From contig OZ316898.1 of NCBI GenBank assembly GCA_973895155.1, positions 12,489,659 to 12,553,658 of the forward strand: a stretch of DNA of 64,000 nt, given 5' to 3'. This DNA is from Marsupella aquatica. Lineage: Eukaryota > Plantae > Marchantiophyta. Every line of letters starts with the position of its first letter. The stretch's first letter is position 1. The translations under genes were made by a program, and so were the position numbers. The notes under the pieces were generated by a model. It saw nothing but the letters and a program-made list of their open reading frames with translations, was not told the DNA's origin and made no database searches. Shown here one piece after another: positions 1 through 29,000 of the stretch.

Positions 1-2635
1 ATCAGGCAGATCTGAGAAATAAAGGGCAATTATGTCTAAGAGTGCAGAGTTTTCGCTGACCTCTAAAATATTAACGCGACCGGGCGTGTGATGAAACAAA
101 GACCTCAATTTTAAAATAGATTGCTGGCCAATTCGCTAGGCTGTCGACTACAATAAACAATATCAAAAGACACGAGATAAATTGGTTCACGCGATTGTGT
201 GCGTGACAAACTACATGTGTAACCAAAAAAATAGGTCATCCTACTAACAAGTTGAGATCAGGAAGATCTGAGAAATAAAGGGCGATTACGTCTAAGAGTG
301 CAAAGCTTTCGCTGACCTCTAAAACATTAACGCGACCGTGCGCGTGATGAAATGAAGACCTCGGTTTTAAAATAGATTGCTGGCCAATTCGCTAGGCTGT
401 CGACTACAATAAACAATATCAAAAGACACGAGATAAATTGGTTCATGCGACTGTGTGCGTGACGAACTACATGTGTAACCAAAAAAAAGGTCATCCTACT
501 AACAAGTTGAGATCAGGCAGATCTGAGAAATAAAGGGCAATTATGTCTAAGAGTGCAGAGTTTTCGCTGACCTCTAAAATATTAACGCGACCGGGCGTGT
601 GATGAAACAAAGACCTCAATTTTAAAATAGATTGCTGGCCAATTCGCTAGGCTCTCGACTACAATAAACAATATCAAAAGACACGAGATAAATTGGTTCA
701 CGCGATTGTGTGCGTGACAAACTACATGTGTAACCAAAAAAATAGGTCATCCTACTAACAAGTTGAGATCAGGAAGATCTGAGAAATAAAGGGCGATTAC
801 GTCTAAGAGTGCAAAGCTTTCGCTGACCTCTAAAACATTAACGCGACCGTGCGCGTGATGAAATGAAGACCTCGGTTTTAAAATAGATTGCTGGCCAATT
901 CGCTAGGCTGTCGACTACAATAAACAATATCAAAAGACACGAGATAAATTGGTTCATGCGACTGTGTGCGTGACGAACTACATGTGTAACCAAAAAAAAG
1001 GTCATCCTACTAACAAGTTGAGATCAGGCAGATCTGAGAAATAAAGGGCAATTATGTCTAAGAGTGTAGAGTTTTCACTGACCTCTAAAATATTAACGCG
1101 ACCGAGCGTGTGATGAAACAAAGACCTCAATTTTAAAATAGATTGCTGGCCAATTCGCTAGGCTCTCGACTACAATAAACAATATCAAAAGACACGAGAT
1201 AAATTGGTTCACGCGATTGTGTGCGTGACAAACTACATGTGTAACCAAAAAAACAGGTCATCCTACTAACAAGTTGAGATCAGGAAGATCTGAGAAATAA
1301 AGGGCGATTACATCTAAGAGTGCAAAGCTTTTGCTGACCTCTAAAACATTAACGCGACCGTGCGCGTGATGAAACGAAGACCTCAGTTTTAAAATAGATT
1401 GCTGGCCAATTCGCTAGGCTGTTGACTACAATAAACAATATCAAAAGACACGAGATAAATTGGTTCACGTGACTGTGTGCGTGACGAACTACATGTGTAA
1501 CCAAAAAAAAGGTCATCCTACTAACAAGTTGAGATCAGGCAGATCTGAGAAATAAAGGGCAATTATGTCTAAGAGTGCAGAGTTTTCGCTGACCTCTAAA
1601 ATATTAACGCGACCGGGCGGGTGATGAAACAAAGACCTCAATTTTAAAATAGATTGCTGGCCAATTCGCTAGGCTGTCAACTACAATAAACAATATCAAA
1701 AGACACGAGATAAATTGGTTCACGCGACTGTGCGCGTGACGAACTACATGTGTAACCAAAAAAAAAGGTCATCCTACTAACAAGTTGAGATCAGGAAGAT
1801 CTGAGAAATAAAGGGCGATTACGTCTAAGAGTGTAGGGCTTTCGTTGACCTCTAAAACATTAATGCGACCGGGCGCGTGATGAACCAAAGATCTCAGTTT
1901 TAAAATAGATTGCTGGCCAATTTACTAGGCTGTCGACTACAATAAACAATATCAAAAGACATGAGATAAATTGGTTCACGCGACTGTTCACGTGACGAAC
2001 TACATGTGTAACCAAAAAAATAGGTCATCCTACTAACAAGTTGAGATCAGAAAGATCTGAGAAATAAAGGGCAATTACGTCTAAGAGTGCAGAGCTTTCG
2101 CTGACCTCTAAAACATTAACGCGACCGGGCGCATCATGAAATGAAGACCTCGGTTTTAAAATAGATTGTTGGCCAATTTGCTAGGCTGTCGACTACAATA
2201 AACAATATCAAAAGACACGAGATAAATTGGTTCACGCGATTGTGTGCGTGACAAACTACATGTGTAACCAAAAAAATAGGTCATCCTACTAACAAGTTGA
2301 GATCAAGAAGATCTGAGAAATAAAGGGTGATTACGTCTAAGAGTGCAGAGCTTTCGCTGACCTCTAAAACATTAACGCGACCGTGCGCGTGATGAAACGA
2401 AGACCTCGGTTTTAAAATAGATTGCTGGCCAATTCGCCAGGCTGTCAACTACAATAAACAATATCAAAAGACACGAGATAAATTGGTTCACGCGACTGTG
2501 CGCGTGATGAACTACATGTGTAACCAAAAAATCAGGTCATCCTACTAACAAGTTGAGATCAGTCTGATCTGAGAAATGGACCTCGATTACATTTTGTTTC
2601 GCTAGGCCGTCGACTACAATAAACAATAGCAAAAT
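1..2635. repeat. Satellite array of 255/256-bp units, ~10 copies plus a degenerate end; continues off the left edge
   Basis: Unit starts (ATCAGG[C/A]AGATCTGAGAAATAAAGGG) at 1, 257, 512, 768, 1023, 1279, 1534, 1790, 2046, 2302 and 2558. Each unit holds two ACGCG-N6-CGCGT-like palindromes. Confidence 0.97.
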
Positions 2636-4029
2636 GTATGGACAACTATACTTGAACGCCATACAATTTTAGACTAGAGAATTCATTTGGATCCTCTACT
2701 AGTACTTCTAATACATTGCTTCTGTATTGGACTTGAAACACGGATTGATCAAAATCGGAATGAGAAATTGGACCATAACTTCATTGACTCAATTCATGCA
2801 TTGAAGGCGTGATTTAAGGCAACTACTCTCCTCATTTATTGTGGAATTAATGTTGATTGATACTTACAAGTTATTCAATTGCGTGTGGTCTCAGCAATGT
2901 TGGCGGCAACCCTCCGATGTTGGCGGAAACCCTCCTCCCAGCCAAGCCTCTTCCTTCCAGCGTAGCCTCCTCCTCGTCCCAGCTAACTAAGCCTCCTCCT
3001 TCAAACTCCAATTTCCTTGAGTATCATGACCGAATCCCACCACCAGAGAATGACAACTTGTTGATCGTATCGAGATCAATATCCTCGACCAGACAGTGAT
3101 TTCAGAATAGCCGCTCTTTGTTGGTCCGCTAGAATGCTTCGATGAATGAGGCAGACTCTGGAGGTTCTAAATCTTTGTCGTCTCGCTTCGTCGCAACTCT
3201 CTCGCTTGATCGGATGTGCTCTCCCCAAGAAGGTGATACAACAAGAACTGCGCCAGCGTTGCTTGAATGAGCTCCGCCTCCAACTGGAATAGTCGAATGA
3301 TCCAATCTGCTCCACCTCAAATATGCCTTGGATCAGCCTCCGCTGAGAGCCCAGCTAGTATCCTGGTTAGGAGAAACTAAAAATGAAGAATGATCCGTGA
3401 GCAATGAGATCAGTCTATTGACTCCATGAAGGATGTGTTCATCTGGACTTGATTTTGATTTTGAAAATTGGTTGAGTCTCCAGTCTTGAGAATCATTGTA
3501 CAGGATTGATTTTGAATATCGGTTCTCCCCGACCGTGAGAATCGTTTTACGTTGTTTAGAGTTTGGGTTTGAATTGGCAAGATAGAGAGTGGAGTACGGA
3601 TCCGGATCTGACTGTCTCCACTACCAAAATGGAACGATTTTGAAGTTCGCCTCCACTACATGATGGAACGATCGTGAGAAAGTTGTCATTCGTTCACATT
3701 TTGGATTTGAATTGGCAGATATAGTGAAGATACGGATCCCGATCCGAGGGTCCCCACTAGCAATCTTTCGCAGTTGCATAGTTATCGGTTTAAATTTCAA
3801 ATTGGCGATCAAATAGAAATCTCCTTTAGTATGGCAAATCAAAAGGAATCCGGTAATCTTTTTTTCACAATTGCATAGTTTGTTGAGTCGATGGTGGAAT
3901 GTATGGAGATCATCTGGAACCTTCCTATCGCTAGGCTATTATTAGGGTTTTGCTAAAATGATACCCTAATTAGTCCTTAGTATCGGCGCCCACGGTCTCG
4001 AGTTCACTGTTCATTGTTGTTGTTTCTTG

Positions 4030-4800
4030 CTCCCTAGACTTTTGCGTGCCTGCTCTCGTCGCTCTCGCTCTCGCTCTTGTCATTCTCACTCTCGTCGCTC
4101 TCGCTCTTGCTCTCGCTCTCGCTTCTGCCCTGGATTTCATTTTTGTCGTTGCAGCTCATTCGTTGTGGTCAGGTGCTTGTCGGCGCGTTGCAGCTCTTAG
4201 TAGTTGTCGATTGTTTTGACCAGGAGCTCGTTGGTGCGTTGCAGCTCGCATTTACAGCTCGTATTCACTTCTAGTTTGCTTGAAGGGATTCTTAGGAGCT
4301 CGTTGGGTTTGTTGCAGCTAGTTTTTTGGGAGTGCTCATATCAGCTCGTGTCAGCCAATTTTAAGCTCATATCAGCTTGATCAACGTGTTTCAGCAGCTT
4401 GAACTACTTTTTGGCAGCTTGTTTCAGCTCCTTCCATTCATCATTCAGGTTTGTTTCACCTCTTTCAATCTTCAGGTTTAGTGCGCTTTTATTCATGCTC
4501 AGTTTGTCTATCGACAGCTTTGATTGTACTTCTGGAAGAGTCTTTTTAACTCGATATAATGAGTTCCTTAGCATTAAGCACATGTTATTCAATTGGCAGC
4601 AGTGAAGCTCTATGTATAGAAGTATAGAAGTTGTGTTGTTGTTGCTTAGCATATTAATATCTTCAATCTTATATTTACTTTCTGGAATGCCGCAACAAGG
4701 TCTTCAAGTGCTTGGACGTCAATCTCTCAGACGATTACATCAATTTTTCAGAATTCAGGTGCAATTTCTACATTTTCTGCTGGTGTTGATTGTTGTTTGC
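4030..4800 (-). pseudogene. Decayed low-complexity/coiled-coil coding remnant
   Basis: ORF 4404..4652 is heptad-like (LNLKIERGETNLNDEWKELKQAAKK). The CTCGCT-type repeats at 4050-4125 read as RE/SE repeats on the minus strand. Many stops. Confidence 0.35.
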
Positions 4801-5238
4801 TAAAATTTCTCTTGATTGTTAAGCTAAGTTTTCATAATGCAATTTGTTTGTAAACTCAAATATGTCTGAATCATACAAACTCACTAATTAAAATACAACC
4901 TGAATCGTCTTAAGTAAGTCATTACAAACCTGCACGCTGTGAATTTAATCATATAAACTCTCATGTTATGTAAATCTCATTACACTGAATCCTTTAATTG
5001 ACAAATACAACCAGTAGACTGCTAAATTGAATCATCTTAGCTGAATCATTCTCTAAATTTTTGATATATAATAGTTTCACAATGACAGAGCTTAAACATC
5101 TGAATTATTATAAAGTTCATGAATGAATACAAATGAATGAATACAAATGAATGAAATCATGCTTACTCGGATTTCCTTGTCCGTACGGGTCAGTAATCAC
5201 TATATTATCCTAGTGTCCAAAAGTTGTTTGAGCTGTTG

Positions 5239-6512
5239 ACGCGACCAGTCGCGTGAAAAGATTGTGAGGTTCCATTTAGGATCAGTTGACGCGACCAGTC
5301 GCGTCTGAGGTAGCTCTCTCATTGACTGGTTCTGTTAGAGGAGGTAAGGTTCCTTTTAGGACCAATTGACGTGACCAATCGCATGTGAGAAGGAAACATG
5401 ATAGATTTACTGAGCGCGTACCATATCCAAATCTCCACAAGGAAGGTTCAGTGGATATAGTTGTTTAGGTTCAGTTGACGCGACCAGTCGCGTCTGAGGT
5501 AGCTCTCTGACTGGTTCTGTTAGAGGAGGTAAGGTTCCTTTTAGGACCAGTTGACGCGACCAGTCGCGTATGAGAAGTAAACAGGATAGATTTACTGAGC
5601 TCGTACCATATCCAATCTCCACAAGAAAGGTTCAGTGGATATAGTTGTTTAGGTTCAGTTGACGTGACCAGTCGCGTCTGAGGTAGCTCTCTCATTGACT
5701 GGTTCTGTTAGAGGAGGTAAGGTTCCTTTTAGGACCAGTTGACGCGACCAGTAGCCTCTGAGGTAGCTCTCTCATTGACTAGTTCTGTTAGAGGAAGTAA
5801 GGTTCCTTTTAGGACCAGTTGACGCGACCAGTCGCATGTGAGAAGGAAACAGGATAGATTTACTGAGCGCGTACCATATCCAAATCTCCACAAGGAAGGT
5901 TCAATGGATATAGTTGTTTAGGTTTAGTTGACGCGACCAGTCGCGTCTGAGGTAGCTCTCTCATTGGCTGGTTCTTTTAGAGGAGGTAAGGTTCCTTTTA
6001 GGACCAATTGACGCGACCAGTCGCGTGTAAGAAGGAAACATGATAGATTATTGAGCGCGTACCATATCCAAATCTCCACAAGGAAGGTTCAGTGGATATA
6101 GTTGTTTAGGTTCAGTTGACGCGACTAGTCGCGTCTGAGGTAGATCTCTCATTGACTAGTTCTGTTAGAGGACGTAAGATTTCAGTTAGGATCAGTTGAC
6201 GCGACCAGTCGCGTCTGAGGTAGATCTCTCATTGACTGGCTTTGTTAGAGGACGTAACGTTCCATTTAGGATCAGTTGACGCGACCAGTCGCGTCTGAGG
6301 TAGATCTCTCATTGACTAGTTTTGTTAGAGGAGGTAACATTCCATTTAGGACCAGTTGACGCGACCAGTCGCGTTTGAGGTAGCTCTCTCATTGACTGGT
6401 TTTGTTAGAGGACAAAGCAACATTTATGATTTGCCACATTGTAACCCGAAAAAATCACAGTCTCTCAAAGAATTGTTTATACATTCTGATTTATTGACGC
6501 GACCAGTCGCGT
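5239..6512. repeat. Composite tandem array of ~80-bp and ~109-bp units, each anchored on the palindrome ACGCGACCAGTCGCGT (15 copies)
   Basis: Palindrome starts at 5239, 5289, 5369, 5478, 5554, 5662, 5742, 5822, 5931, 6011, 6119, 6199, 6279, 6359 and 6497. Confidence 0.95.
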
Positions 6513-6553
6513 GAAAATCATCCCTAGGATATATCATTTGGCTTAAAAGAGTC

Positions 6554-6874
6554 ATGGGCGAACCTGGTCTGGAGAGCTTTAGATATCTATGCCCAATATT
6601 TGACGTTTTGGACAGAAGCCAAGATGGTCTACTGGTGGGATATTTTGTATTTGTTGAAACACTACTACCTGGACTTCCAGATTTCATTGTGGCGGAATTG
6701 ATATGGCCTCGGATCAAGGAGTCTTTTAATTCCTCGGCTAATGCAGGAAATTTCTCAATAAAGGAATTGGATGAGTTTGTAGGACTATCTTCGGTGTGTC
6801 GCAGATGGCGCCACCTTGTTGGGAATACCTATCTTCTGGGTGTAATCAAGTTGAGTTTATTAGATTTGGCTTAA
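6554..6874 (+). pseudogene. F-box-like protein fragment 1
   Basis: LLPGLPDFIVAELIWPRI...LSSVCRRWRHLV matches the plant F-box pattern LPGLPDD...L..VCRRW. Confidence 0.65.
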
Positions 6875-6938
6875 ATCTCAGAATCTAGGTGGTCCCAGTT
6901 CTTAATGGATAGGTTTTGTTCTTAATATTTTCCATATT

Positions 6939-7469
6939 ATGTTGCAGTCCTTTGACATGAATCAAAAATCTCATCGTCAAATGATGATGGAGCGCATTGC
7001 ACGTGCAAAGGTTATGAACCGAAACATGATATGGAGTCAAGCTGAAGACCTGATACCCAGTCTTCCGGACGATATTGTCGAGAAATATATTTGGCCATTA
7101 GTCAAAGAGTTTTTCCACAGTCTTGGGAATTTGTCGGATAATGCGATTAAAAATCGGGTCATGGACTTGATCGCCATTTGAATAGTCAGTAAGAAGTGGT
7201 GCCACATAGTTACTTATAGTAGTACTTGGGCGACAGTCACTTTGGTAGCTTACGACTTCACTGATAGACCAGGATATGAATCGCTTCGAAGGCATTTGAC
7301 TTCACGGAGTGTAGCATTCAGATTTACAGAATCCATCAGAACTCTCCCGTCGCTGGACATTCTGGGTGGATTTGAAGGATCTGAACTTGACACGTTTAGG
7401 AACCTTTGGTTTTGGTTAGATGAAGATGAGCGAGAGGATTGGGTCAAGATAAACATTCCTAAAATATAA
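6939..7469 (+). pseudogene. F-box-like protein fragment 2 with a premature stop at 7179-7181
   Basis: LIPSLPDDIVEKYIWPLV...DLIAI*IVSKKWCHIV, continuing in frame into ORF 7242..7469. Confidence 0.6.
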
Positions 7470-8249
7470 TTCGGCACGACGCGACCATGCGCGTGTTAGT
7501 ATTTTATAATAAACGTTTAACTTTCAATATTTGTCTGTTTCAGAATGGATCCTACCCGAACTTCAAAGCGGAAAAAAGACTCGTCTAAAGCCGCTTCTCG
7601 TAAGAAATCCAAGACAAAAATGACTCCCGCAGAGACATCCATACTTGCATATCGAGGAAAGTCAATCAGAGAGAGAACAACGGAGATAAAGAGTATCCAT
7701 CTCTTTGAATCGACTGAGATATCCGATTTTGGAATAGTCGTTCGCAATGGGGCTGTCCATCTTGTGGTGGCAAAAAATGATAAAGCTACAGTTTTGGAGA
7801 GATCACAAATTCTTGGGTGTTTCTTTGAGAAGAACATGAAAGTTAAAGAGTATACAGAGGGATTGGTTCTGCTAGTCAGCGACGACCAGCAGGAGGACAA
7901 AATAAGCATTTGTTTGGATCGAACGCAATATGTAACCTTCAATCAGCCCAGAATCGATGATCTTCTAGGTGCAAGGCACGCCTTGGAAAAGGTTACTAGT
8001 GTGGGATATCCTTCCGATCCAGAGGGATCAACGGGAGATTTGATTTGTCAATATATTATTGACGTACTTGAGTTCCAGAGAGTTCCTTTCAACCAGGGAT
8101 TTCGCTTGGGAAAGGCCCCCCCAGTGACCAAGGTTGAAGTATACTCGGCGAAGAATCTTCCGAAAGTAATTACCTCAGCGAATGTCGGGGCTCTGTTCGA
8201 TTTTTTCCTCAAAGAATATAGTGCTGTGAATATATTTAACAGCAAGTCA

Positions 8250-8700
8250 TTTTTTGTTGAGACATCACGTTGTCATCTTGACCGGACCACATCAAGTGCC
8301 GAGAGTGGAATCAGGATTACATAGATAGGCTAAAGAATTCACTCCTCTCTCATTCAGCTATAAAGTTCAAAAAGCGATGTTGCATTTTAGTCCCTGTGAA
8401 GTGGGTTCAGTCGGAGGCCGACAGAGATCCCAACTACAATGGGGCGCCCTACGATTTGGCGCCAACGGAGGAGGACATTATGACCAGTCATTTTTGGATA
8501 CTCGGAGGCCAACACACAATAATAGCGTACAAATTGCTGAAAGAGGACGACAAAGTCAGCCAAGTTGTACGAGACGCTTGCGGTACTGTAGAAGCTATAA
8601 TGTTTTGGGCAACGCTCAACAACGACAATAATATTCATTTGATGGGATTATCGAAGGCTCTAAACCAGTGTCATCAAACATCAATGGAAGAAGGATAGTT
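8250..8700 (+). other. ParB/Sulfiredoxin-like N-terminal domain (within the large pseudogene)
   Basis: After frameshift correction: VETSRCHLxPDHIKCREWNQDYIDRLKNSLLSHS...ILVP...FWILGGQHTIIAYKLL. This follows the ParB-N pattern R....(I/V)..L..S...(I)xxG(Q/N)HR..A, with T in place of the R. Confidence 0.55.
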
Positions 8701-11700
8701 TCTCACCATTGTACGACAGTGTCGTAATATCTGGAACTCATTTGGGCAGCCTGGACCACATTATCGTCATCCAAATTGGAAGGTATATAAATAACCCTCT
8801 TCGATCACATTATCGTTTAAAATTTTCATGCGAAAGGTCGCGTCAAGCTTAGAATTTTTCTCACGCGAACGGTCGCGTTAATCTTAGAATTGTCATATTT
8901 CCATTGTTTTCAGGTATTTATGAGAGCTACGAGTTTTGTTTGCCCATGGGCTCAAATAGGGAAGAATGAAATGATGAAATTTGGAGAATTGGCTCCGTTT
9001 CTCTTTACAATGGAGGACAAAACATTCAAGAAGTGGATGGAGGTCTACGAACTGTCAAGGACAGGAGAGCTTGTAATTTACAACGGAATTTTACAGAGGG
9101 ACGCTGTCAAAATTGCGGATAATCCCTGTGCTTATCATCTTCTGAAGAAGATGTTCCGTTCTTGTCAAGGGTGCTCAGACTCGGTTCTTTGAAAGGCAGC
9201 GGAATATATGTTGAGCGGAAGACTGTCTATACTCAAAAACCGAAGCATCAAAGTGAAATCTGGAAAGGCGAGGAAGTCCTCTGAGGCTCCAGTGTTGTCA
9301 ACGACCAGCATGAGTTTGGAGAAATTTTGTATAAAGAAGAAGACAAAAGTTGAGTTTGAGATTTTATTATTGAGTAAACTCAACAGGGATACATCCACCC
9401 GGACGGAGCTGAAAAGTCTGACAGATTCAGCGCGGAAATTGTGGGTCAAATGAGTGATTGATCGTTTTAAGCTCGACAAGATGGTGTTGAAGCAGTTGAG
9501 AGATGCACTGAGTGCTTATCTAAAGAAGTGCTTAAATGTAAATATTAGTGCTGATAATTTGTTGAAAGAGATCGACCCGATATTCTACAGGTTGGTGGAA
9601 GGAATACAGAAATCAGTTGATAGTCAAGGAAACCAACTAGTGCGGCCGGTCAATGAGAGGCTGAAATTGCGATCCCTGCAGGATATACAAAATGTTGGGT
9701 TTGCAGACTGTATCATACGTGAAGACAAAAACCTTGCGAGCTTGATTTATATTGATTCCTCATCAATGGGAGATTTGCGTCCGCCAAATTGCTCATTCTA
9801 TGAGGGGTTATTTTGTGCTACTAGCAAGATAGGGGCAAAACCACACCATGTGGTTATTATTGTAGCCTCTCCCGTTGAGTCTTATTTAATCAAACGGGAA
9901 TTAGGGAAGTACACACACTACGTTGCTGTCGATAGCCATTATATTCAGAAGCGGCCGAAGGAGAAGAAGCTTATTGTAACCTACGCTTTTCACAGCTTAG
10001 CCTTCAGCACAATTGGCGATCCACAAGCCCTCGAGTTCCAATTGGTCTCCAAATATCGGATTGAGAAGATAGCCAATTTTGAAGAGAGCGGCGAGTACAC
10101 GACACCTTCCCCAGAAAAGATACTTCCATTCTTTGAAAGTATTGTTAGTCAATTCGTCCAATATGGGGAATGGGCTATATGCTTCGGCGAGGAAACGAAC
10201 TTGATCCAGTGCTTAATGGTAAGTTTTGAGATTTATATTTTGGGGTTTCGATTTTAAGATTATTTAGATTATTATATTCTCAATTAATATTGTGAACTAA
10301 TTTTGGCTTTTTTATAGGATGTTGGATCCAATGTAAAATATTACTGCCCTGTGGCAACGCATAGGGAGTTGTCTTGTTTCTTGCAACACACCACGGCGAT
10401 AATTGATACAATGCTGTCATTGATTGACCCAGTACGGGCTAGTATAGAAAAATGTATAGATAAATTAATGAAGTACCGTCCATCCATAACTGCTCTCAGG
10501 GCTGATGTTTTGGATGTCCTCCATGAACAACATATCCCTGATAATATTTGTAATCAATTATTGCAAGAGTATGCACTCTTTGAAGATTCCGATTGATTGT
10601 ACATTCGACCAACGGAGTACCCTAGTGGGTCAATCCAAGGTAGGTTACTTTTAAATTCTCTTACTTTTTCTTGCGTCACGCAAACATGCGCGTGGACATT
10701 CTTAACATTTATTTGCACGCGAATATGCGCGTGAGTCATTCTTATCAAATGATTTGATTTTATTGAGATCAAGTCGACTGCGGCTTCAATGTTGAGGATG
10801 CAGGGAGCAATGGTGATGCGGATGGTGAGGGGGAAGGTGACGCGGAAGGTGACGCGGATGGGGATGTCAATGACCAAGATCCAGAGTGGATGACCGATAC
10901 ACAGAACGACGTCGGAGATTCCGACAATAGAGGAGATGAAGAGAGTGACAAAGAGGAGATGAAGGACGTTGAGGACGCTGATGAAGAGGACGAGGAGATG
11001 GAGGGTTCTGAGGATGCTGAGGACTCTGATGAAGAGGCCACATAGGAGCCTCGACATGAGGTGGACCGAGAGGAGGCGGCCCGGCAGGAGGAGGCCAGCG
11101 AGGAGGCGGCCCAGCAAGAGGAGCTTCAAAAGGAGGCGGCCTGGCAAGAGGAGCTTCAAAAGAAGGAGGCGGCCCGGCAGGAGGAGGCCCGGCAGGAGGA
11201 GGCCCGGGAGGAGGCCCGACAAGAGGCGTCCCGACAAAAGGCGGCCCGGCAAGAGGAGCTTCAAAAGAAGGAGGCTAAGAAGAAAAAGGCGGCAGCTAGA
11301 AAAGCAACTACCGCGAAGAAGAAGGAAAAAGCCGACGCTGAGAAAGCCCAGGTGGAGAAAGCCAAGGCTGAGAAAGCCGAGGCTGAGAAAGTCAAGGCTG
11401 AGAAAGCGGAGGCGGAGAAAGCGGAGGCTGAGAAAGCCCAGGCTGAGAAAGCGGAGGCTGCGAGAGTCCTTTTAGTGACAAAGGCAATTAGGGCCAAGGC
11501 GGAGAGTGTGGCGGCTGAGAGGCTGCTGGCCGAGAGGATGGCAGACGAGACCGCAAGACCGGAGAGGGTGGAGGCGGAGAAGTTGGAGGCGGAAAAGGTC
11601 GATTCTGCAAGATTGGAGAGAGAAGAAGCCGCAAGACTGGAGAGAGAAGAAGGCACAAGATTGGAGGCAGCAAGGAAGGAGGCCGAGAGGGCCAAGGATC

Positions 11701-12504
11701 TTTCGCTTATTCCTGAGGCACAACATCTACCGAAAATAAAGTTGAATTTGAAGAAGCCTTCTTCACCCTCAGTTGTAGTTAAAAAGAAAATATTAGACTA
11801 TTTTCTTCGCCCGAAGTTTGAATTAAATGATCCACCCTTAAGTACGGTCTCGTTGGATGATTGGAATAAATATTCACCAAAGCAGCTCTGAGTCCAGGCA
11901 ATCTTTGCTTTGCAATATTGGAGGGGTCTTTTGATTACCGAGGAGAAGACTGCCAGTGCATCCAGAATGGAGACAATCATCAATAATGTCCGCTTTTCCG
12001 AGAATCGAGTGCAAGACCTGGGAACGTCTTTGGCACCAGACTCAGCTCAAGTCGTTAAGAGACTAACAGCTGACTTGACGCGACCGGGTTCATGGTCTCG
12101 ACCCCGATATATTGCAGAGGTCACTCGCGCAGAAATTGTGGCACCGGATATTTTGGAATCGGATTCCCAGATTGTGGAATATTTAAATCAAATGCCACAA
12201 CCATTTGAAGGTCTTCCCGAGTCATCGCTCCAACCTTCGCAAACTGGTCCGGTGGAGCGATCACTGCGATCTCGAGGAGGGCTGAAGGATGTTGTTGCGA
12301 AGGAGGCACCCAAGGGATCAGCTGCGAAAAGGCCGGATCCACCCAATCCAAAGGTCATTCGCAAGCTATAAGCTTAAAGTTTCTATTATAGACGTCATTA
12401 TTTTATTATTGATTTGTTATTGTTTATGTTTTTTGAGGTAGAACCCTTAGGCTACAACCTTAGTACGTTATTTGAAGGCGTACTGAAATCTCTGTTTTTT
12501 GCAG

Positions 12505-13200
12505 TTTTTTGAAAATTTGGCTAGTCGAATAGATCAATGCCTTGATCCTTCTAAGAATATGGAAGAGCTATTGACCAAGTTCTTACAACACTCGATCAAG
12601 AGGAAACATATGATGTGTTTGAGTCCGCGCGAGTTGCTCACCGATGATATAATTAACGCTTATTTGAGTTTTCTCGAACTGATTCTCGATAGAGTTGGAA
12701 AGTCAGACCTTGTCAAATTCTTCCAAATACACCATTTTGAGCTTCTCTCCATGGATCCTACCATTTTCGATGAGGAGAGAGCAGCTTGGACAAAGGAGTT
12801 TCCGCTAAAAATCAGTGAATATGACAAACTGGTCTTTCCAGTACATAATGCTGTGAAAGAACATTGGTCATTGGTAGATGTGTATCCGAAGGAGAAACGG
12901 CTCGAGTACCTAGATTCTCTAGTTCATAATCGACAAAATCCTGGGGTGCTAGATATTGTTGGGAAGTACTACGCCGACAAAATTGGTTGGAGAACTGGTG
13001 TCAACTTGGATCTCTCAGGTTGGGAACGGATATATCGGAATGATATTCCTCACCAGAGTGACGGCCACAGTTGTGGTGTGTTTATCTTGAGATACGCCAA
13101 GTGCTTGTGTCAAGGAAACGAAATTAATTTTGCCGTGGATCAAATTGAGAAATTCCGTAGGGAGATAGTCTTGTCGTTATTTGACATGGACTTCCGCAAG
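12505..13200 (+). other. Ulp1/SENP peptidase C48 (SUMO protease) domain with intact catalytic residues
   Basis: LTDDIINAYL, FPVHNAVKEHWSLVDV, EYLDSL and IPHQSDGHSCGVF give the His-Asp-Cys triad plus the oxyanion Gln. Confidence 0.93.
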
Positions 13201-13549
13201 CCAACGTCCGCAAGTAACCTAGTTACCGGGATCCATGCTGCTATGATTGACATTTCTGGCGGAATTCCAGCATTGAACGATCGTCTTGTACAGGTAATAC
13301 ACTTCATTTCAGTATCTCTCTCTGTAGTCACGCGACCGTTCGCGTTATAAACTTATTTTCATTTCTTAATATTTTATAGAAGCCTATCTTGAAACCCCTT
13401 GATCGAGTATCGAAGGCACCAGTCTGGAAGTCCGGTGATCGTCCGGAGGCGGGAAACAAACAGACCGTTCTAGTACGTTCTCCAAACCCTGCGGCACAAA
13501 AATCACAGGTACAGATGGCGCCTAATCCATCAGCAAAGAAGTCACCGGT

Positions 13550-15898
13550 TCAGAAGAGACTTGTAATTTTCGATCTGAATCGGGTACTTATCTGGTCAGA
13601 GAAGATCAGCCCTGGGATGCCCATTCGGTCAAGGGGTGTGAGACAGATGCATAAGGTTATCTATCCAAGGCCTGATTTAATGGAATTTCTTGAGAAGGTG
13701 GCAGATCTATACGACATTGTGATCTGGTCGTGCATGTTCAAACGAAATATTCTATCTTGTGTAAGGCTGATACTTCGACCCGAAGTTTTGAAATATATTA
13801 AATTTATATGGGGACAAGAATCAACTCGACTTATTGGGAAGAATAATAATGACATCCCCTTATTTGTCAAATGTCTCTCCGACATTGCCGCCAATATTAA
13901 AGATTACAACATCGAGAATGTCATTCTTATCGATGATGCTGCATATAAGACGAGTCTTAATGACTTCTATTCATCGCTGTATCCCGATGCATATTCTGGG
14001 CTCGATGATGACCTATTTTTTAGAAAGAAACTATATCCATATCTATGCGACATGTCAATTGACAAGTTGACATTCCGCGAGCTCCTTAGTGGATATGGGA
14101 TTCCAACGTTCTCTCAAGAAAATCTTGAGAAAGATTATATTGATAAGACGAATCTTTAGAGGAGAAATGTGATCATTCGTAATCAGGGGAATAAAGACCA
14201 TTTAGAAAAGTTTGACAAATTTATGAAATACTTATCTGCCAAAAAAGACCGTGCTATAGAAGCCCGGGATAAGTCCAATAAGTAAACATTTATTGTTTAT
14301 TATCAATTATTATTTATAAATTGATTGAAATTGAACTTTATATTTTGGGAGTGACGCGTCCGGTCGCGTGGTTGTTTGTAATTGCATAATATGAGAATTA
14401 AATTGTTCATTTATAGGTGTCTAAGTGGAGCAGGTCGCGGGCAACTTCTAGTTGTAGGACTGGAAAACTTCCTGTGCTCTGTTTCAAAATATACTCCTCA
14501 GCTCAAGTCGACACCCGGAATTCGTATCGGATCTCTATGTGTCGTTCCGAGGCTGCATCTTCATGATCTCATAAAATTCTGTTATGATTTTGATGTGATG
14601 GTTTGGTCTATTCTCGACGATAAACTGGTTTATCAAATACTTTCAGAAGTGTTGTCGAGCACCGACCTGTCGTAGCTGATATATGTGTTCACGCGGGATC
14701 ATTGCTGGAATCTTGGTTATGTGAAGAAAAATTATAAGACTGTTGTCTTCAAATCTATCGAGAGACTACGTGATATGTTTCAAGATTATCGACCAGAGAA
14801 TATAATCTAGATTGATCCCTGTCCTTCCCATACATGCCAGACAGCTGTATGCCGATTATTGTTTGCTAAGTCGTTTCAAGGATCGTTGGATGATGTCTTT
14901 TTGAGGGATGACCTCATTTCATATTTACGAAAGCTACCAGATTCAGGGCTTTGTCTTGCGTCCGCTAACAAGTTTGATTATCCCATCTGGTCGATTAGAA
15001 ATCTACATCGAGATTGGGATCTGAACGAGGATATATGGGAGCATCTGTACGTGCAAAGACATGCGGATCAAGTTCTTATCAAGCACTTCAACAGACGTCA
15101 CTTATCAATAGCTAGAGTATAGAGGATGTTGTCTCTGTAATATGTGATGCGTCCATTCGCGTGACTACATCCATACGGGCTCATGCATCTTCTTGTGTTT
15201 CTCTACAGGAGATTCATTGCAGCAGAGAAAATGGGCTCATAGTTTTAGACGTGGAGCATCTACTTTGTTACACTGCACCGCATTCCCGACTGATGGCGGT
15301 CTCAACTGGAATTCAGATTGGGAATATATACGTTTTTCCAAGGCCTCATCTTCACGAATTCTTGAGATTCTGTTTTGAGAATTTTGATGTAGGGATCTGG
15401 TCTTCTCTTGGGAAGAACCTTTTAGATCAGATTTTAGCATCTATTTTTACTGCGATGGAAATGGCCTCATTTAAGTATATTTGGGATCAGTCTCATTGTT
15501 ACTTATGCGATGGGGTGACATCAAATAAGCGGATATTTTTGAAGTATTTTGAGAAGGTTGGAATTTATACGAAGGCATATCTGCAGCAAAATATAATGCT
15601 TATCGAATCCGATGCATTTCATGCTTGTTTAGATCCTGTTGTTGGATCATTATTTCCACCCAAATATTTTGGGTCGGTCGACGATAGTTTCTTGATTAAC
15701 TTGCTGATTCCGTATCTTAGCAAGCTAGCAAACTCTTGTGAGCCGCTTGTCATTGCCAATGGAAGAGATTATCCTGATTGGTCAGTTAAATCTATTTTTA
15801 GAGATTATGATTATAATCATACTCTATGGGAAGACCCTATGATTCAGAGGCATGGAGATAGATATCTAGTAGAGCAATTTAACAAACGCCCAATTTAG
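13550..15898 (+). other. Three tandem FCP1/NIF (CTD phosphatase-like) HAD domains, one per exon
   Basis: RLVIFDLNRVL...YPRPDLMEFL...DIVIWS...KFIWGQE...FVKCL...NVILIDD. Copies 2 and 3 repeat it (VPRLHLHDLIKFCYDFDVMVWS; FPRPHLHEFLRFCFENFDVGIWSS...YIWDQSHC). Confidence 0.85.
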
Positions 15899-17204
15899 GA
15901 CGCTTCCAAAATAATAGTCGGCATGAGATCAGATTAATTTGTATTGTCGTTCTAGAAACCATTTGTAAACTCCTTATATACTGGTTATCATATATAAAGG
16001 ATCTCAGAGATTTATTTCTCTATTATTATTATTCGCGTGAGCATGTTTCTTGGTCCCGTCAAGTTGGATTGGTTAAAATATGATGTTGCAGTCATTTTCA
16101 GGGTTTCACGCGCAGCCACGCGTCATATCGCCCCCTTTTATTAAAATAATAATAGTGATTTTTGGAATTTCCAAAGTTTGGTTTTCCTTAAATTGGGGTT
16201 AGCCTGTCCATTTTTGTTTCCCATGTAACTTATTGGTCCATCCAGGTTCTTGGTAAGGGGGTGCTACTTCCTCTTGGGGAGCTCAATTATTGTGGTGCGC
16301 AAAATTGCAATCCAAGCTCTGTTGGAAGGGTCACATGATATGGAAGTGTATATACACTCTAACCACTGTAACCAAGGGAACCCAGCTCCTTCAATTGAAT
16401 GAGAATGGAGGCCTGCATGGAAAGAGTATTGGAGAATTCTACTGAAAACTTTCTATTCCCAGTCAAATGCTTGTTTACATGTCATCTTTGAAACATAATG
16501 TAAAACATGTTATGTCTGCAGGAAATTGAAACATTTCCTTTGTGTCCATAAGGGTTTCAATCGTCCATCCAAGCTTCCATTTTGAGACAAATGCATGCGT
16601 ACATGTCATCTTGCAAACATAAGTGTAAAACATGCTATGGTAGCAAATTTAAGCAATTCATTTGTCCGTCAGGTTTCATGAGTCCATCCGGGCAGTGCAT
16701 CAAAAGCTCGTGTACGAGCATGTGCCATACAAGGTTTTACTTTGAGTCAAATTGCTCACATGTCATCTTTGTACATAAGTGTAAAAGCATGCTATGTGAG
16801 CAAATATAAACTTTTCATTGGCGTCCATCTTGGAATCCTGTCAAACTTTTGCATCCAATTGAACTTCCACACAGATGCATGTTTACAAGTCATCTTTGAA
16901 ACAGAAGTGAGAAACATGATATGGTAGCAAATTTAAGCAATACATTTTTGTCCATCGGACATCACCTGAAATGTATGTTTACAATATCTGAGTGTCCACT
17001 TCAAGTCAAATATATGGTTACATGTCAATTTTTGAGATATAAGTGTAAAACATGCTATGTGAGCAAACTTAAACCTTTCATTAATTTTGTCCATCTGGGC
17101 ATTAGGTCTAACGTTTGCAGCCAATCTGAGCTATTACTTGAGTCAAACGCATGTTTACAAGTTTTCTTTGAAACAGAAGTGTAAAACATTCTCTGTGAGC
17201 ACAT

Positions 17205-18680
17205 CAGTGGTGGACCTCGCAACCCAGTGCCCTCACCAATCCCAGCACTCGCGCCTAAGTGCCCTTGGTGTCCGAACGCCTCCACGGGATACCTCGAGCA
17301 AGCACCCTAGTGCCCCTTGCACCACCAGCGGCCACTCCCATACAAAGCCGCACTTGCTCTCCTACACGACCCCTACTCAACGATCCTCACCGTCTGCACA
17401 AGCAACCAAGCACCTCGGTAAGTAACCCTTCAGGATCTAGAACTCACCAAGTCTAGCATCCTAACTCAAGCTCAACAGACGTTGGTAAATAGGTCAGCGA
17501 TAGGTCCTCCCGATGCCATAAGCCGGAACCAGAACCCACGCCCACTGTCCGTCCAGGACAACTCCTTCCTTGGGCGCGGCCCGGGTTCCCCCTCGTACCT
17601 ATCCATCACCAACTGACCGCCCTGACCTTAGGACATGCTCATGGCCCAAATAGCATAGCTTGTCCTAAAGCTTGTTCCAAGCTTGTCTCAACACGCCGGG
17701 ACCAGAATGGCCCCGACTCTACCAACCACTCCCGGTTCGCCCCACTGATGGTCTAGGGACCAAGCGCCCTTGGGACTCAGCCTCCATACCTACTTGGCCT
17801 TGCCTCCCCAACGCAAGCTCCCTTGGGAGGCTGAACGCGGCTTGGTTGCTGTTTGGCAGGATTTGGCAAGCGGGCGAGCTAACACCCCAAACCACGAGAA
17901 CCCATGGCACCCCCAGACCAATCTGAGCCTCAAGAGTTTTCCAACGCACCCAAGAAGTCCTCCAACGGACTTCCCGTTGGGAAGATATTGTCATTTATGT
18001 TTGGCAGTTTCCCTTAGTGTCGCGACCGCCGCGGCTCACGACTTCGGCTCGACCTTAGCCCCCAAGGAGACACCACTCCCCTCATATATGCTTCTGGAGA
18101 CCTGCCACCCCCGGACCAGCTTTGGTCCCTAAACATTTGGCCCCCAACCCGGATCTCATCGCGCATAATGGGCGCGCCACCAACTGGAAACACCCATAAC
18201 TTTCTTGATAGGCATCCGCAAGCAGAGTGCCTTAGCCCGTTGTGACCAGGCCGACCCGGTGCTCATGCCTAGGCCCTCAGGTCTGATTGTCGCTCGGGGC
18301 CCCCGACTGGCCCAACCCGGATCGGGCCACAACTTGCGCCCCAAGCGTCCGTTGCCAATGACGTCAACTCCATTGGCCTTGGGCCCAAGAGGAGCTCACT
18401 CCCAAGCCCTCAGAACTCAAAGTCCATCCGACGGTCCGGACAGCCATCCTTGAGCCCGGCCCATTTCCCCTTGACCCGACCAGCCATAGGCTAGTCCAAG
18501 TCCTTAGTGTGTGTCCCCAGCTTGGCCCCTTGCCTCGCCAGTGCCACGTCTCATTGCCCACAAGTCTCCCCATGCTAAGTCCTCCCCGGATGGCCTATCC
18601 GGGCCTGGACCATAAGGGAGCTCGGCGTCGGAGTCAGCGATGCCGGAGCTAAGTGTTAAGGTAGTCGAGTTCCATGACTA
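17205..18680 (-). mobile_element. GC-rich, heavily decayed insertion, possibly a LINE ORF2 remnant
   Basis: Abrupt GC shift inside the AT-rich repeat. Faint pre-RT-like motifs on the minus strand (SCPG../FW...PIADLF.N). Many frameshifts. Confidence 0.35.
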
Positions 18681-18949
18681 CATCTGAATATTTCATTATT
18701 CCATCCAGGCATTATGTGAAACATTTTTGTACATCTGAGTATCCACGTCGAGTCAAATGCATGTCTACATGTCATCTTCAAATAATTGTGTAAAACATGC
18801 TATGGTAGAAAATTATGTAAGCAATTCATTTGTGTCCAATATGGTGTGTCAAAAGCAGGGCCATAATTGAGTTACGACCAAGGACATAAAATGCTTTTAT
18901 GAGCCAGACAAGAACATTTTGGGTACGTTACCTACATACCAGCTCCTTC

Positions 18950-20290
18950 AGAATATATATCACATTGCCAAAAAGACAGGACGCCAAACTGGGAGACATG
19001 GTCCCAAAGGCAAAAGAAGGGGGGAAGGGAAAGACCCCAAGAAGACCAAAGAGGCCGAACAAGTCAAGGAGTATCCCAGAAAAACCAAAAGACTAAGAAG
19101 CCAACAACAAACAAAAAACCCTATTGGGTTGAAATTGGGTTGAAACTGAGAAGCCTGGTAGAGCTTCAGAGTAAACCACATAAGAGGGTCATGGAAGGGA
19201 ATTTTCCTAGAGGCCCTCAAATCGACTGCCTCGGCCATATGAAGAATAGTGAAAGCCTGGCCCTCTGAAGAGCCACTAACACCCTCATTCGAAAGAAGGT
19301 CATGAGGACAGAAACAAGGGGAAAAGGTCTCCATTCAATACAAAACACAACACAAGCCCGAGGGAAGTGGTCAAAACGAGGGTGGAGAGCACCAAAGACC
19401 TCAAGGGCAAAAGGGTAGAAAAGATCCCCCGGGTAACGAGCCGCATAAGCATCCTCCTTGAGCCGAGCTGCCTTGGCTGCAGCATGTCTAGGAACATGGG
19501 CTGCTACAACAACGTTACTCCCACCAGTAGGATCAGCAACCACCACATCACCGAGGGAACGAACATGTGCCCGAGGAAACATCAGGTCAGCCCGACGCAG
19601 GTCAGAAATGCCATTCTTGGGGGGGGGGGGAGGGGGAAGGACATGCCGGTGCTCCATAGCAACATGGTACCCAGAGTCCCCAGAAATGGCAGCAACCACA
19701 TCCCGAATGTCATCGTGAGTCCCCGTCCACTCACTCTTGTGGCCGCACCTAAGAATATGAACACCGGATGGGTCCAAAGATACCCCACATACACAAAAGG
19801 GTTTGGCCGAGGAGGCAAGGATGAAGGAGGCCCAGATGGAGGTGCATAGACATGGTGAAGAGGAAGGAGCTTATGCGCAAAAAGGCAGGCTCCCTAACCA
19901 GAACCCGAGCAAGATAAGAGGTCGGCCCGAACCGAGTCCAAAGGTGCATCTGAGAGCATGCTAGAAAGGTAATGATGGTGCATGCGGTCAAAAATCACCT
20001 GCTAAACACAATCCAGATTGTCAAAGACTACCTCCACAAAAGCGGGAACAATAGCCTGCACAACCTCGGGTAGTAATGACCGAGCATGGTGGAGTTGAAC
20101 CTGGAATGAAAGACTCTCATCCTCCACCCCCATGACATGGTCAAAAAGGATGGGCCAAAGATATACAATGAACCCAGAGGCAAGAGCAGGTGCCCAACAA
20201 CCCAAGAAGACACAAGGGGCTGTGGCCACAAGAGAGGAAACGCCCATGCCCCCACAGGATGGGGGCAAAGAGACCTGTCAAGTAGCAAAA
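18950..20290 (-). mobile_element. 5'-truncated non-LTR retrotransposon with Zn-knuckle and restriction-like endonuclease (CRE/NeSL-like)
   Basis: ORF 19217..19777: DPSGVHILRC...THDDIRDVV...RRADL...GDVVVADP...AARLKEDAY...PFALEVFGAL. ORF 20002..20268 (GGMGV) matches the post-RT region. Confidence 0.85.
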
Positions 20291-20875
20291 GAATGGTATC
20301 TCCAACAACTTTCACACATAATACCTTGTTTATGGCATGACTCTGACCCTGCTTATCTCTTATGCATGTTTACGTGTCATTTTTCAAACGGAAATGTCAG
20401 ACGTACTATGGTAGCAAATTTAAACAACCATTCGTGTCCATCACGGTTTCACGTCCAAACGTTTGTGAGCATCTGAGCTTTCAAGGGTATTTTGAGATGG
20501 GCGCTGAAGCAAAATGTTTGAATGTACAAAACGGGACATAATTCTCTTCAGCAATAATGGCGATGTCAAAAGCAACTCTACATTCAAAGCACCATCGAAA
20601 TTGATCACAAGCATAATTAATTGCCCGTCGTTCACAAAGGCGGAAGTGATCATTCGTGCTCTCGTCCACCACCTCATTGATTGCGCTCCACAGAGAGCTT
20701 TCAGGAATTGTCGAAGATGTCCGATTGTCCAATTTCTCGTTCTTCAATTGGAGACAACCTTTCCATTCCTTGAATCTCAGCTGCTCTTCCTTTGCGATGA
20801 GTTGAGCACACGTATGCTTTGCGGACCGATCGGTCCGTGATCAGAGAGCGAGAGAGAGAGAGATAGACTACGGTC

Positions 20876-25520: not shown

Positions 25521-25813
25521 TGTTAGAAACTGCGCTGTACTCGTGACATTAAGGGAGTAATAGACCACTCGCTGTCCTTAGTACTATGAGCTTGACAGGA
25601 GCGCATTATGCGCTCCCCACTTACGGTAGTAAATACAGTAGGTGCGCCCCATGCGCTCCCCACTCTGCTTAGTTAGCGGTGTCTCTTATTACTAGTAGGT
25701 CTAGGTTAGTAGCCCAGTCCGTCGATCTCCCTTGATCTGCGATCTCCTCTCTCTACTTATATGGCCCTCCGCTGCATCTTCAGTATTCAGTCTACTTACG
25801 ATAGATTCCAACA
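25521..25813 (+). repeat. 5' LTR
   Basis: TGTTAGAAAC...GATTCCAACA, followed by the tRNA-iMet PBS. Confidence 0.97.
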
Positions 25814-26009
25814 TGGTATCAGAGCCAGGACTCTGAAAGATTAGCTACATCTTCGTAATCTGAGATTAGAACGATAGTGCAGTCATCAGGTAGAAAGTGT
25901 CCCTGATTAGCGCACTCTTTAGACAGCTCCTCGTGTAGAAACGAGATACGTGTAACTACAGTCTGAGTGAGAATTCCTCAAACTGCACTTACACCATCGG
26001 TAATCCCAG

Positions 26010-29000
26010 ATGGACCTACTTAGATTATTCTCAGAGAGCGACAAGCTCGATGGCTCTGTGAATCACATGACTTGGACCATAGTGGTCAAGAATCTCTTGC
26101 GAAGAGATGAACTATTTGATGAGCTGAACTTTGGCGTGAAGCCAGACGCCAATGGTGACATTGTTGACGGAGGTCAGCACCTGACGGCAGCTGAAAAGCA
26201 GAAGAAGAAGGTTCGGGCAACTTCAATCTTGGCAGCTACAGTCAAGTCCAAGTTCCTGCCCACTGTTGACCGATACAATGCTGACCCTGCCAAATGCTGG
26301 GCACACTTTCAGCAACAATTCGGAGGCAATCTTCTTCAGCGACAGTTACTGTTGGAGCAGAAGCTTCAAAGCGTCACCATGAGCAATGGTGGCTCGGTTG
26401 AAACGTACATCAACACTGTTAACGAGCTTGCTGGTCACTTGTCCAGCATCAATGCCGAGACCGATGAGACTCGCCTAATACACATCGTACTTAAAGGGCT
26501 CCCAAGTTCCTGGGGTCCCTTTGTCTCTATGTTTGCAGCTGATCTGTCTCGCACTCCAAAGCCAACCTACTCCAGTCTGGTTGAACACCTCCAGGCTGAA
26601 GAGTATTGGAAGAAGGGGAAGCAGATCGAGGTGACGGAGGAAGCAATGGCTGTTACACGTCACTTTGGTCGAGGTCGGGGACACTTTCAGCCACGAAACG
26701 ATGGCTACAATCAGCCACGAGGAAACGGCAACTTTGGCAACTTTTGTAATCCACGTCCAAATCCTGCTGGACGTGGCAGGAGGCTCGGGAACTGCAACTA
26801 TTGCAGCAAGGTAGGTCACTGGGAAGCTGATTGTGACCTTAAGAAACTAGATGATCAGATTGCTGACCTACAGTTGAAAGCTGCAGGCATTCGCAGGTTC
26901 CGTCCCCAGGCCAACATTGCTGAGCTCCTCCCTGAGGCAGAGGTCGACGAAGAAGACCAGATTGAGTTTGCCACTGACGAAGGCGAACCTATCGAGATCA
27001 ACTTCACTGAGATCAATGCTCAGCGTAGCTCTAGCGAATGGATTTTAGACTCCGGTGCAAGTACTCATGTGAGCGATGATAATGTTGTGTTCCACAATAT
27101 CACCCCAGGTGCCCGCTCTGATTCTGTAACCACTGCCAGTGGCACTCAGCTTCCCGTAGCTGGCCAGGGCAGTGTCTCCGTTGATGAGAATAAAGTTGTC
27201 TCCAATGTTTTGTACGTCCCGGGTCTGAAACGTAATCTTCTATCCATCGGAAATCTAACAGATGCAGGACACCTTATTCTCTTCAATTCTAAGTCCTGTT
27301 TCATCTTTGACAAAGATAATCCATGGAAGGTCTTCCTCCACGGCACCAGAGATCCTCGGAACAAGCTTTATAAGCTTCGTCAACGACTTCCTATTCTCAC
27401 TCCTCCCTATTCACCATTACGTGTACAGCTTCGATCAACTCCTGCACTGGTTACTGAGGTCTCAACTCCTGATCATGCTGCACCAGTCTCGACCACTGCT
27501 ACATCGACTTCCGATCAAGTCAAACTCTGGCATCGACGCTTAAGTCACGTCAATTACCAGATGGTACACCATATGTCTAAGGGCTCCTTAGTTACTGGTA
27601 TTCCGCTGCTACCACGAGTCAAACGAGTTTGCCATACCTGCACACTTGGCAAACATCATGGAGAGAAGATTCCAAAACATTCCATGACTCGCACTTGTCG
27701 CCCTTTGGAACTTATTCACACTGATCTATGTGGACCAGTCCGAGGTCCTGCCCCTTCCAAGTATATCCTAACCTTCATCGATGATTTTTCCCGTTTCACG
27801 TGGGTTTATTTCTTATCCAGAAAAAAGTGAGACATTTGATATCTTTAAGGAATTTCGACTTATGGTTGAGAATAAATTCTCCCACAAGCTAAGTTGTCTC
27901 CACTCTGACCGTGGTGGAGAATACATGTCTACCGAGTTCCTTGAGTTTTGCAGAGAAAATGGCATTCGACGACAATTGACTGTGGCTAATGCCCCTCATC
28001 AAAACGGGGTGGCTGAACGGAAAAATCGCACACTTCTGGAAGGCGCTCGCAGTATTCTCATCGGTTCACACACCCCTCTCTCACTTTGGACTGAGAGCAT
28101 CCGCACGGCCAACTATATTCAAGATCGTTCAGGCACGAAGGCCCTCCGTCAAACTACTCCGTTCGAAGCTCTTCATGGTACTAAGCCTGACCTTGGGCAC
28201 CTTCGCGTGATCGGCTGCACGGCATACGTGCTTCTTCCAGACTCACTATGCTCCAAATTAAGTGCTAAGTCTATCCCTACTTTATTTCTTGGTTATGATG
28301 AGGAGTCCAAGGCTTATCGATGCTACGACACCGTGCGCCACAGAATTCTCATTTCCAAAGATGTTATTTTTGATGAGAATACGATGTGCATCCCTTCCAC
28401 AGTTCGTTCCTCTGCTGCTGATTTTTTCACCAGACTTCTCTCAACTTCAGATGAGGATCCTCTCGACCAACAACATCGACCTGGGCCTCTCGTCCCAGAG
28501 GGGGAAATTCTTCCTGGACCCGAGCAAGTCCAGCATGGCATCGTGGACCAGGCCAACATCATACCTGCTGATGCTGCTCAACCTGAGCCCGCTACGCCAA
28601 ATATTCAGCCCAACATTCCAGCAGTTCCTCCTCCACCTCGGCCGGCTGCCACTCGACATTCTCTAAGAGCTCATCGACCACCACCTTGGCACGATGACTA
28701 CGATATGAGCACCAACTTAGTTGAATCTGCTAGTCCAGAATGTGAGCAGCTATCTCCAGAGGAGGCTCTCAAACATCCTGGCTGGAAAAAGGCTATGGAA
28801 GAAGAGATTGCATCTCTCCTGAATATGGGGACTTGGGAACTTGTGTACCTCCCCGCTGGCAGAAGAGCTCTTACAGCCAAATGGGTCTTTCGGGCCAAAC
28901 CCGACTCCACCCGGTTCCGTCTCAAAGCAAGGTTAGTTGCTCGTGGATTTGAGCAAAAATTTGGTGTAGACTATAATGAAACCTTTGCTCCTGTAGTTAA

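Follow-up and report, generated by a model that had tools for sequence, protein, structure and literature searches.

The VANC anti-silencing proteins of Arabidopsis target motifs in VANDAL elements, which are Mutator-like transposons (PMC5735166). Transposons of brown, green and red algae carry accessory genes with ParB-like and methyltransferase parts, and the products of these genes have been proposed to bind and modify their own element (PMC12477816). Among them, Sola1-1_Ec32 of Ectocarpus carries a ParB plus DNA methyltransferase gene (PMC12477816), and in the Bostrychia Plavaka element PAG3 tandem inverted-repeat arrays lie beside a ParB-like gene, for which the same action on its own element has been proposed (10.1101/2025.02.11.637652). 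The idea of self-recognition is thus already published for algal transposons, and we found no paper on such a system in liverworts. Here we add a liverwort case, a palindrome (ACGCG-N6-CGCGT) and a large composite gene that lie together at the left end of a 64,000-nucleotide stretch of the Marsupella aquatica genome (assembly GCA_973895155.1, contig OZ316898.1, positions 12,489,659 to 12,553,658; hereafter the window). The gene and its flanking arrays are referred to below as the cassette.

The locus resembles VANC/VANDAL (PMC5735166, PMC10398659) in that the motif is private to its element, stands in non-coding regions and tandem repeats and differs among related elements, and in that the proposed binder is an accessory protein encoded by the element. 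The proteins appear unrelated, as judged by domain content. The liverwort candidate is a ParB-like protein with a probably dead methyltransferase fold, joined to Ulp1 and NIF units, and VANC also differs in its motif, which is no CpG-rich dyad. For VANC, experiments have demonstrated both binding and methylation loss, whereas the liverwort system is known here from sequence alone.

The palindrome is private to the element, has a strict dyad geometry and is restricted to non-coding DNA. Across the 64-kb window there are 23 exact matches, where shuffled sequences predict 0.01, 39 matches when one mismatch is allowed (0.29 expected) and 46 when two are allowed. Forty-four of these are distinct sites within 74-16123; the other two are a match at 16118 that overlaps site 16108 and a chance match at 55000. 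No copy with one mismatch or fewer occurs beyond 16123. The initial annotation, which had listed about 44 copies in arrays and dispersed positions and no full copies past 16.2 kb, was therefore accurate on all three points, and the mismatch-tolerant counts reproduce its partition exactly, with 20 sites in array 1, 15 in array 2 and nine dispersed (starting at 7479, 8828, 8863, 10678, 10717, 13330, 14354, 15147 and 16108). Its description of constant arms, fixed 6-bp spacing and a variable centre also agrees with a scan of gaps from 0 to 30: the half-site words ACGCG (n = 40) and CGCGT (n = 34) within 1-16200 form 23 pairs at a gap of 6 and none at any other gap. The remaining 47.8 kb of the window, which includes host genes, served as a check on the frequency of the motif in other DNA and contains seven ACGCG and seven CGCGT words with no dyad among them. 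The motif stands in about ten unrelated sequence contexts, the flanks of the different site classes are dissimilar, and arrays 1 and 2 have nothing detectable in common except the motif itself. CpG transitions account for 23 of the 26 arm mismatches, a mark of a methylated, decaying copy. The sites and the right end of the repeated DNA are distributed as follows (arrays are given with their strand; no strand is assigned to the other features).

1-2577, + strand: array 1, a 256-nt unit repeated ten times with two sites per unit (20 sites), extending past the left edge of the window
5239-6512, + strand: array 2, 80- and 108-nt units, 15 sites
7479-7494: single site just before the start codon, 50 nt 5' of the ATG at 7545
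8828-8878: two sites 35 nt apart within the inferred intron 8784-8918, the position of which is backed by the relative P0008
10678-10732: two sites 39 nt apart in the gap at about 10646-10760, after the exon 10351-10596
13330-13345: single site in the inferred 90-nt intron 13294-13383, 5' of NIF unit 1
14354-14369: single site 47 nt 5' of the inferred acceptor of NIF unit 2 (before 14416)
15147-15162: single site in the inferred 76-nt intron 15132-15207, 5' of NIF unit 3, with one mismatch (a CpG transition)
16108-16123: last site, 210 nt 3' of the stop codon
16172-16200: approximate right end of the multi-copy DNA, from contigs of public DNA runs

In array 2 the motif is an extended dyad, GACGCGAC-CA-GTCGCGTC, with 8-base arms and a 2-base centre. 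The spacer between the arrays (2578-5230) has neither the motif nor a recognisable open reading frame (ORF). Directly after the site at 7479 a GT...AG stretch resembles a 47-nt leader intron, and the pair at 10678-10732 is located where relatives from the liverwort Calypogeia have a second palindrome array. Splice-signal reading gives about eight short gaps in the gene, five with sites and three without. The gene span covers 8.35 kb, of which about 1.05 kb is read as non-coding, and all seven of its sites fall in this part, a placement whose chance we estimate at about 3e-5, given the inferred intron limits and counting five independent places. The initial annotation had put sites in five of seven introns and in both flanks; the five gaps and the upstream and downstream sites stand, and the total becomes about eight, some of the breaks between ORFs being stops or a frameshift and not introns.

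The stretch is multi-copy in two organisms, according to contigs of public DNA runs. Contigs that match it without differences begin at 16172 and 16188, other copies diverge after about 16200, and the summed depth drops there. The repeated DNA therefore ends on the right about 60-90 nt beyond the last site. This high copy number and sharp right boundary suggest that the cassette resides in a transposon. The ratio of observed to expected CpG is 0.85-0.94 in the element (1-16200) and 0.53-0.67 in its surroundings, also when the motif is masked. Just past the right end, seven copies of a 40-77-nt unit (core ATGCATGTTTACATGTCATCTTTGAAACA) occupy 16459-20434, and public contigs show another repeat beginning near 16368.

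Three cassettes in an assembly of Calypogeia fissa (L002, L003 and L004), which encode P0008 and two paralogues, allow the palindromes of related loci to be compared. They are colinear with the window through the N-terminal domain, the ParB-like part, the methyltransferase-fold exon and the NIF units, and they lack Ulp1. The window motif ACGCG-N6-CGCGT is absent from all three, which have palindromes of their own.

L002 (reference): CGAACC-N2-GGTTCG, 27 copies against 0 expected
L004 (75% protein identity to L002): CGAACC-N2-GGTTCG, as in L002, six exact copies
L003 (58% protein identity to L002): GCGAGCC-N2-GGCTCGC, 30 copies against 0.01 expected, in the same layout as L002

The sites of L002 form one array 5' of the gene and another after the methyltransferase exon, and single sites precede the NIF exons. 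Between L002 and L003 one base is changed per half-site, across arrays and single sites, and a search of each locus with the motif of the other at up to one mismatch finds just one match each way. Both loci have a single site 5' of the second NIF exon, at a homologous place; it is CTGCGAACC in L002 and CTGCGAGCC in L003, and it has therefore switched together with the arrays. The ORF for the N-terminal and ParB-like domains differs between the same two loci with a pN (nonsynonymous) of 0.25 and a pS (synonymous) of 0.75, so this ORF has been kept by selection; on these proportions it is under purifying selection between two specificities. That related cassettes might carry other palindromes that track the protein had been anticipated in the initial annotation, and this is the pattern at the three loci, with the sister copies L002 and L004 sharing one palindrome as close homologues should if the motif is conserved. 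On the comparison of these sequences the motif shows lineage-specific turnover at conserved positions. That homologous places within a single genome carry different palindromes speaks against a host factor and in favour of one that the element encodes.

We interpret the 16-base dyad as a putative cis site that would be recognised by a sequence-specific DNA-binding protein, probably a dimer, which this transposon family encodes. The likeliest binder would be the cassette's own large protein, loading along cognate copies with an outcome like that of VANC, and we give this interpretation an even chance of being correct. The protein would consist of an N-terminal domain, a ParB/Srx-like candidate, a helical region and a catalytically dead beta-class methyltransferase fold, continued in the window lineage by a coiled coil, a Ulp1 SUMO protease and three pseudo-phosphatase NIF units. 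The many sites in upstream arrays and short introns could load it along the whole element, with loading restricted to cognate copies, and it could thereby bring Ulp1 and partners to element chromatin, where its effect would probably be to activate the element or shield it from silencing, much as VANC does on VANDAL. We infer protein binding, the identity of the binder, its dimeric mode, the chromatin outcome and anti-silencing through deSUMOylation. The interpretation offered in the initial annotation is supported in part. More tentatively, the reader may derive from a bacterial or phage-type ParB-methyltransferase fusion that lost catalysis. It would read a dyad private to the element and anchor a SUMO protease, together with pseudo-phosphatase and F-box partners, to the element's own chromatin, and a change of one base per half-site could re-set its specificity from one sister lineage to the other. 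We regard this fuller account as possible and the less probable of the two.

Several points weigh against the cassette protein as the binder. Slippage amplifies arrays, and with 35 of the 44 sites in tandem arrays copy number alone overstates the independent support. Four loci with three motifs underlie the co-variation, and because all genes of an element diverge together it does not discriminate between the cassette protein, a transposase and an F-box partner. Neither the left end of the element nor any transposase falls inside the window, the intron limits come from splice signals only, no RNA run having been found that contains the stretch, and the ParB assignment is a weak lead. The gene to which the proposal refers has the following parts, all on the + strand.

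6554-7469, + strand: two paralogous F-box-like ORFs and a third small ORF, directly 3' of array 2 (F-box E 0.005, below the Pfam cut-off)
7545-8276, + strand: N-terminal domain of unknown fold, colinear with relatives and followed by a frameshift at about 8277-8281
8282-8755, + strand: ParB/Srx-like candidate domain with an invariant W-I-x-G-G-Q-H-T and an in-frame TAG at 8696
8911-10254, + strand: helical region and predicted beta-class DNA-methyltransferase fold in one exon, D-S-S-S replacing DPPY, with in-frame TGA at 9190 and 9451
10760-12371, + strand: acidic stretch, then Glu/Ala/Lys-rich repeats resembling a coiled coil
12499-13293, + strand: Ulp1/C48 SUMO-protease domain (Pfam 2e-18 for ORF 12499-13350) with the His, Asp, Gln and Cys positions present
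13389-14159, + strand: NIF/FCP1-like unit 1 (Pfam), DLNRV replacing DxDxT
14382-15122, + strand: NIF/FCP1-like unit 2, in two ORF pieces, found by self-comparison
15161-15898, + strand: NIF/FCP1-like unit 3 (Pfam)

The initial annotation had described a ParB-like/SUMO-protease/CTD-phosphatase-like gene. Pfam confirms its Ulp1 and NIF domains, and the ParB part remains the weak lead already mentioned. The DxDxT motif is missing from all three NIF units (DLNRV, GLENF and DVEHL), and these units are for that reason unlikely to be active phosphatases. Protein searches were run ORF by ORF. They returned only 12 relatives of ORF 9454-10257 among 1.84 billion representatives, and P0001, P0002 and P0006 come from short Logan contigs without usable context. 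The best relative, P0001 (50% identity), aligns in a single frame across 8938-10233, so the breaks at 9190 and 9451 are in-frame TGA stops and not introns. Relatives have arginine at two of the three in-frame stop positions of the window copy (TAG 8696, TGA 9190 and TGA 9451), and the frameshift at about 8277-8281 was deduced from colinearity with a single frame in L002. Three stops and one frameshift, as read from the sequence, make the window copy of the gene dead, a pseudogene. Metagenome contigs scanned with a single protein gave no relative, and when such contigs were scanned with the array-2 site, three GC-rich ones of bacterial appearance each had a single chance match and were otherwise unlike the window. 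No ParA-type domain was found in the ORFs of at least 60 amino acids scanned in 1-16200.

A beta-class DNA-methyltransferase fold is present, as modelled on the 50%-identical relative. For P0001, which stands for window positions 8938-10233, an AlphaFold model that used the family alignment (pLDDT 78) places this fold at residues 241-452, with motif IV before motif I. Foldseek matched the model to CcrM with an E-value of 5e-5, and VIA aligned 176 residues to the same enzyme with a Z of 12.3; the top ten VIA matches were all beta-class N6A/N4C DNA methyltransferases, and MboIIA, M.BceJIV, RsrI and PvuII had Z of 10-12. Motif IV, (D/N/S)PP(Y/F/W), is missing. The window has D-S-S-S at this place, relatives have D-C-S-V and D-S-T-L, and since the family pattern D-[CS]-[ST]-x stands where DPPY is expected, catalysis has probably been lost.

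The ParB assignment is less secure. Searches for ParB_N (PF02195) or a ParB/Srx structure with Pfam, NCBIfam and PDB phmmer were blank for 8396-8698 and 8282-8695, as were PDB profile searches with family alignments of four and eight sequences. The ParB-like piece had no tblastn match in phages, and a homologous-protein search with the 100-amino-acid ORF returned no candidates. ESM features score 0.90-0.92 to the ParB_N, DUF6551 and DUF3723 clusters, which is a lead only, and sub-threshold hidden Markov model matches were obtained to DUF6551 (E 0.16) and to a PHROG ParB-like family (E 0.099). The single-sequence AlphaFold model of the piece was unusable (pLDDT 42). Eight family members share an invariant G-G-Q-H-T-x-x-A-Y that has no arginine, GGQHT replacing the GxxRxxA arginine motif with which true ParB binds cytidine triphosphate (CTP).

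The strongest competitor of the cassette protein is the transposase of the element. It would be encoded outside the window and use the palindromes as its sites, the cassette protein doing something else; the sites would then be comparable to the subterminal and internal repeats of En/Spm TnpA, or to AtMu1, whose transposase activates cognate copies. Both the model and this likeness seem to us unlikely, though they are the best of the alternatives. In favour of a transposase are the closeness of the last site to the right boundary of the multi-copy DNA (about 60-90 nt) and the position of the arrays on the side of the left end, which is out of view; co-variation cannot tell a transposase from the cassette protein. 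Transposases are reported as sequence-specific activators of cognate copies (10.64898/2026.08.24.746577), and the En/Spm, Ac and Mutator systems likewise have many short cognate sites in subterminal and internal non-coding DNA and self-specific regulation. The liverwort sites differ from these transposase and TnpA repeats in being fixed-gap dyads that run through the introns of an accessory gene, with no transposase in view. The window contains no transposase ORF or terminal inverted repeat, and the 10 kb around the cassette are free of transposase ORFs in the window, L002 and L003, each of which nevertheless has the complete layout of sites. Some sites are also far inside the gene, in the introns that precede NIF exons, and their positions are conserved from one genus to the other. 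At L004, in 15943-19883, an ORF with a DUF7869 match (6e-38) lies on the strand opposite the ParB-like gene and is accompanied by a 36-nt array in which a second palindrome, TCGATA-N3-TATCGA, occurs five times; the ParB-like gene retains the L002 palindrome CGAACC-N2-GGTTCG. This is a hint that transposase and cassette use different sites, membership of both in a single element being unproven.

An explanation without a dedicated protein is less probable again. In it GC-rich palindromes would be spread or homogenised by slippage, short-tract conversion or mini-insertion, or would act as cruciforms or as RNA hairpins in splicing or small-RNA production. The concentration of 35 of the 44 sites in tandem arrays fits such a process, as do the intron pairs 8828/8863 and 10678/10717, which are local duplications, and the L003 site, a perfect 24-nt palindrome with strong hairpin potential (-13.9 kcal/mol, z -7). 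However, several dispersed sites of the window have single-strand hairpin energies no better than shuffles (z -1.3 to -2.5) and still keep the arms and the exact 6-nt gap, which indicates that sequence and not stem stability is conserved. At the intron sites of NIF2 and NIF3 the motif has been retained between flanks that have diverged to background, and the switch of one base per half-site between L002 and L003 is complete in arrays and single sites alike.

CAMTA transcription factors recognise the box vCGCGb. A reading of the palindromes as paired CGCG boxes or another motif for such a host factor, the alternative offered in the initial annotation, is very improbable: although the GCGCGT half-sites of array 1, 7479, 10678 and 10717 fit vCGCGb, the majority (ACGCGA/TCGCGT) do not, the dyad is absent from the neighbouring 47.8 kb with its host genes, and the lineage-specific switch within one genome gives paralogous cassettes different palindromes at homologous places.

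With the cassette protein as the preferred binder, the locus can be compared with the prokaryote-type systems. The algal giant transposons have a similar architecture, in which a ParB-like part (here a lead only) is combined with a methyltransferase and inverted-repeat arrays lie near the gene. Compared by described architecture, the liverwort lineage differs from them in its loss of motif IV and its additional Ulp1, coiled-coil and NIF modules; its sites are also found in short introns, and site turnover between paralogues is documented. Bacterial ParB-parS likewise has a clustered palindrome of the 16-nt class, and the ESM features of the candidate N-domain are nearest the ParB_N/DUF6551 clusters. 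It differs from the liverwort case, which has GGQHT for GxxRxxA, no ParA partner seen, no Pfam or PDB sequence match and a eukaryotic nuclear context.

Other features of the window lie mostly beyond the cassette. A Copia-type long terminal repeat (LTR) retrotransposon with gag, integrase and RVT_2 occupies 25521-30969, and it is a young insertion because its 293-nt LTRs are 100% identical. An ORF at 21034-22134 matches PfkB carbohydrate kinases (4e-18) and is probably an exon of a host gene. A 35-nt unit (AACGACCTCTTGGGCGACACGACATC...) is repeated about 20 times at 56912-57604, with degenerate copies from 56654, and similar CT-rich CTCTCGTCGCTCT repeats occur at both 4052-4123 and 39459-39522.

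If the proposal is correct, VANC would have a counterpart of independent origin in liverwort transposons, a second self-recognition system that is made from a dead prokaryotic DNA methyltransferase and coupled to deSUMOylation. The known range of ParB-methyltransferase accessory genes, which have been reported from algae until now, would then reach land plants, and on the fuller account the system would represent a natural, evolvable and sequence-programmable chromatin-targeting system distinct from VANC. The GAACC and GAGCC half-sites of Calypogeia fissa provide a ready pair of sister specificities for a swap experiment. Such a system would also offer a concrete way to study how DNA transposons evade or adjust silencing in plants whose haploid phase is dominant.

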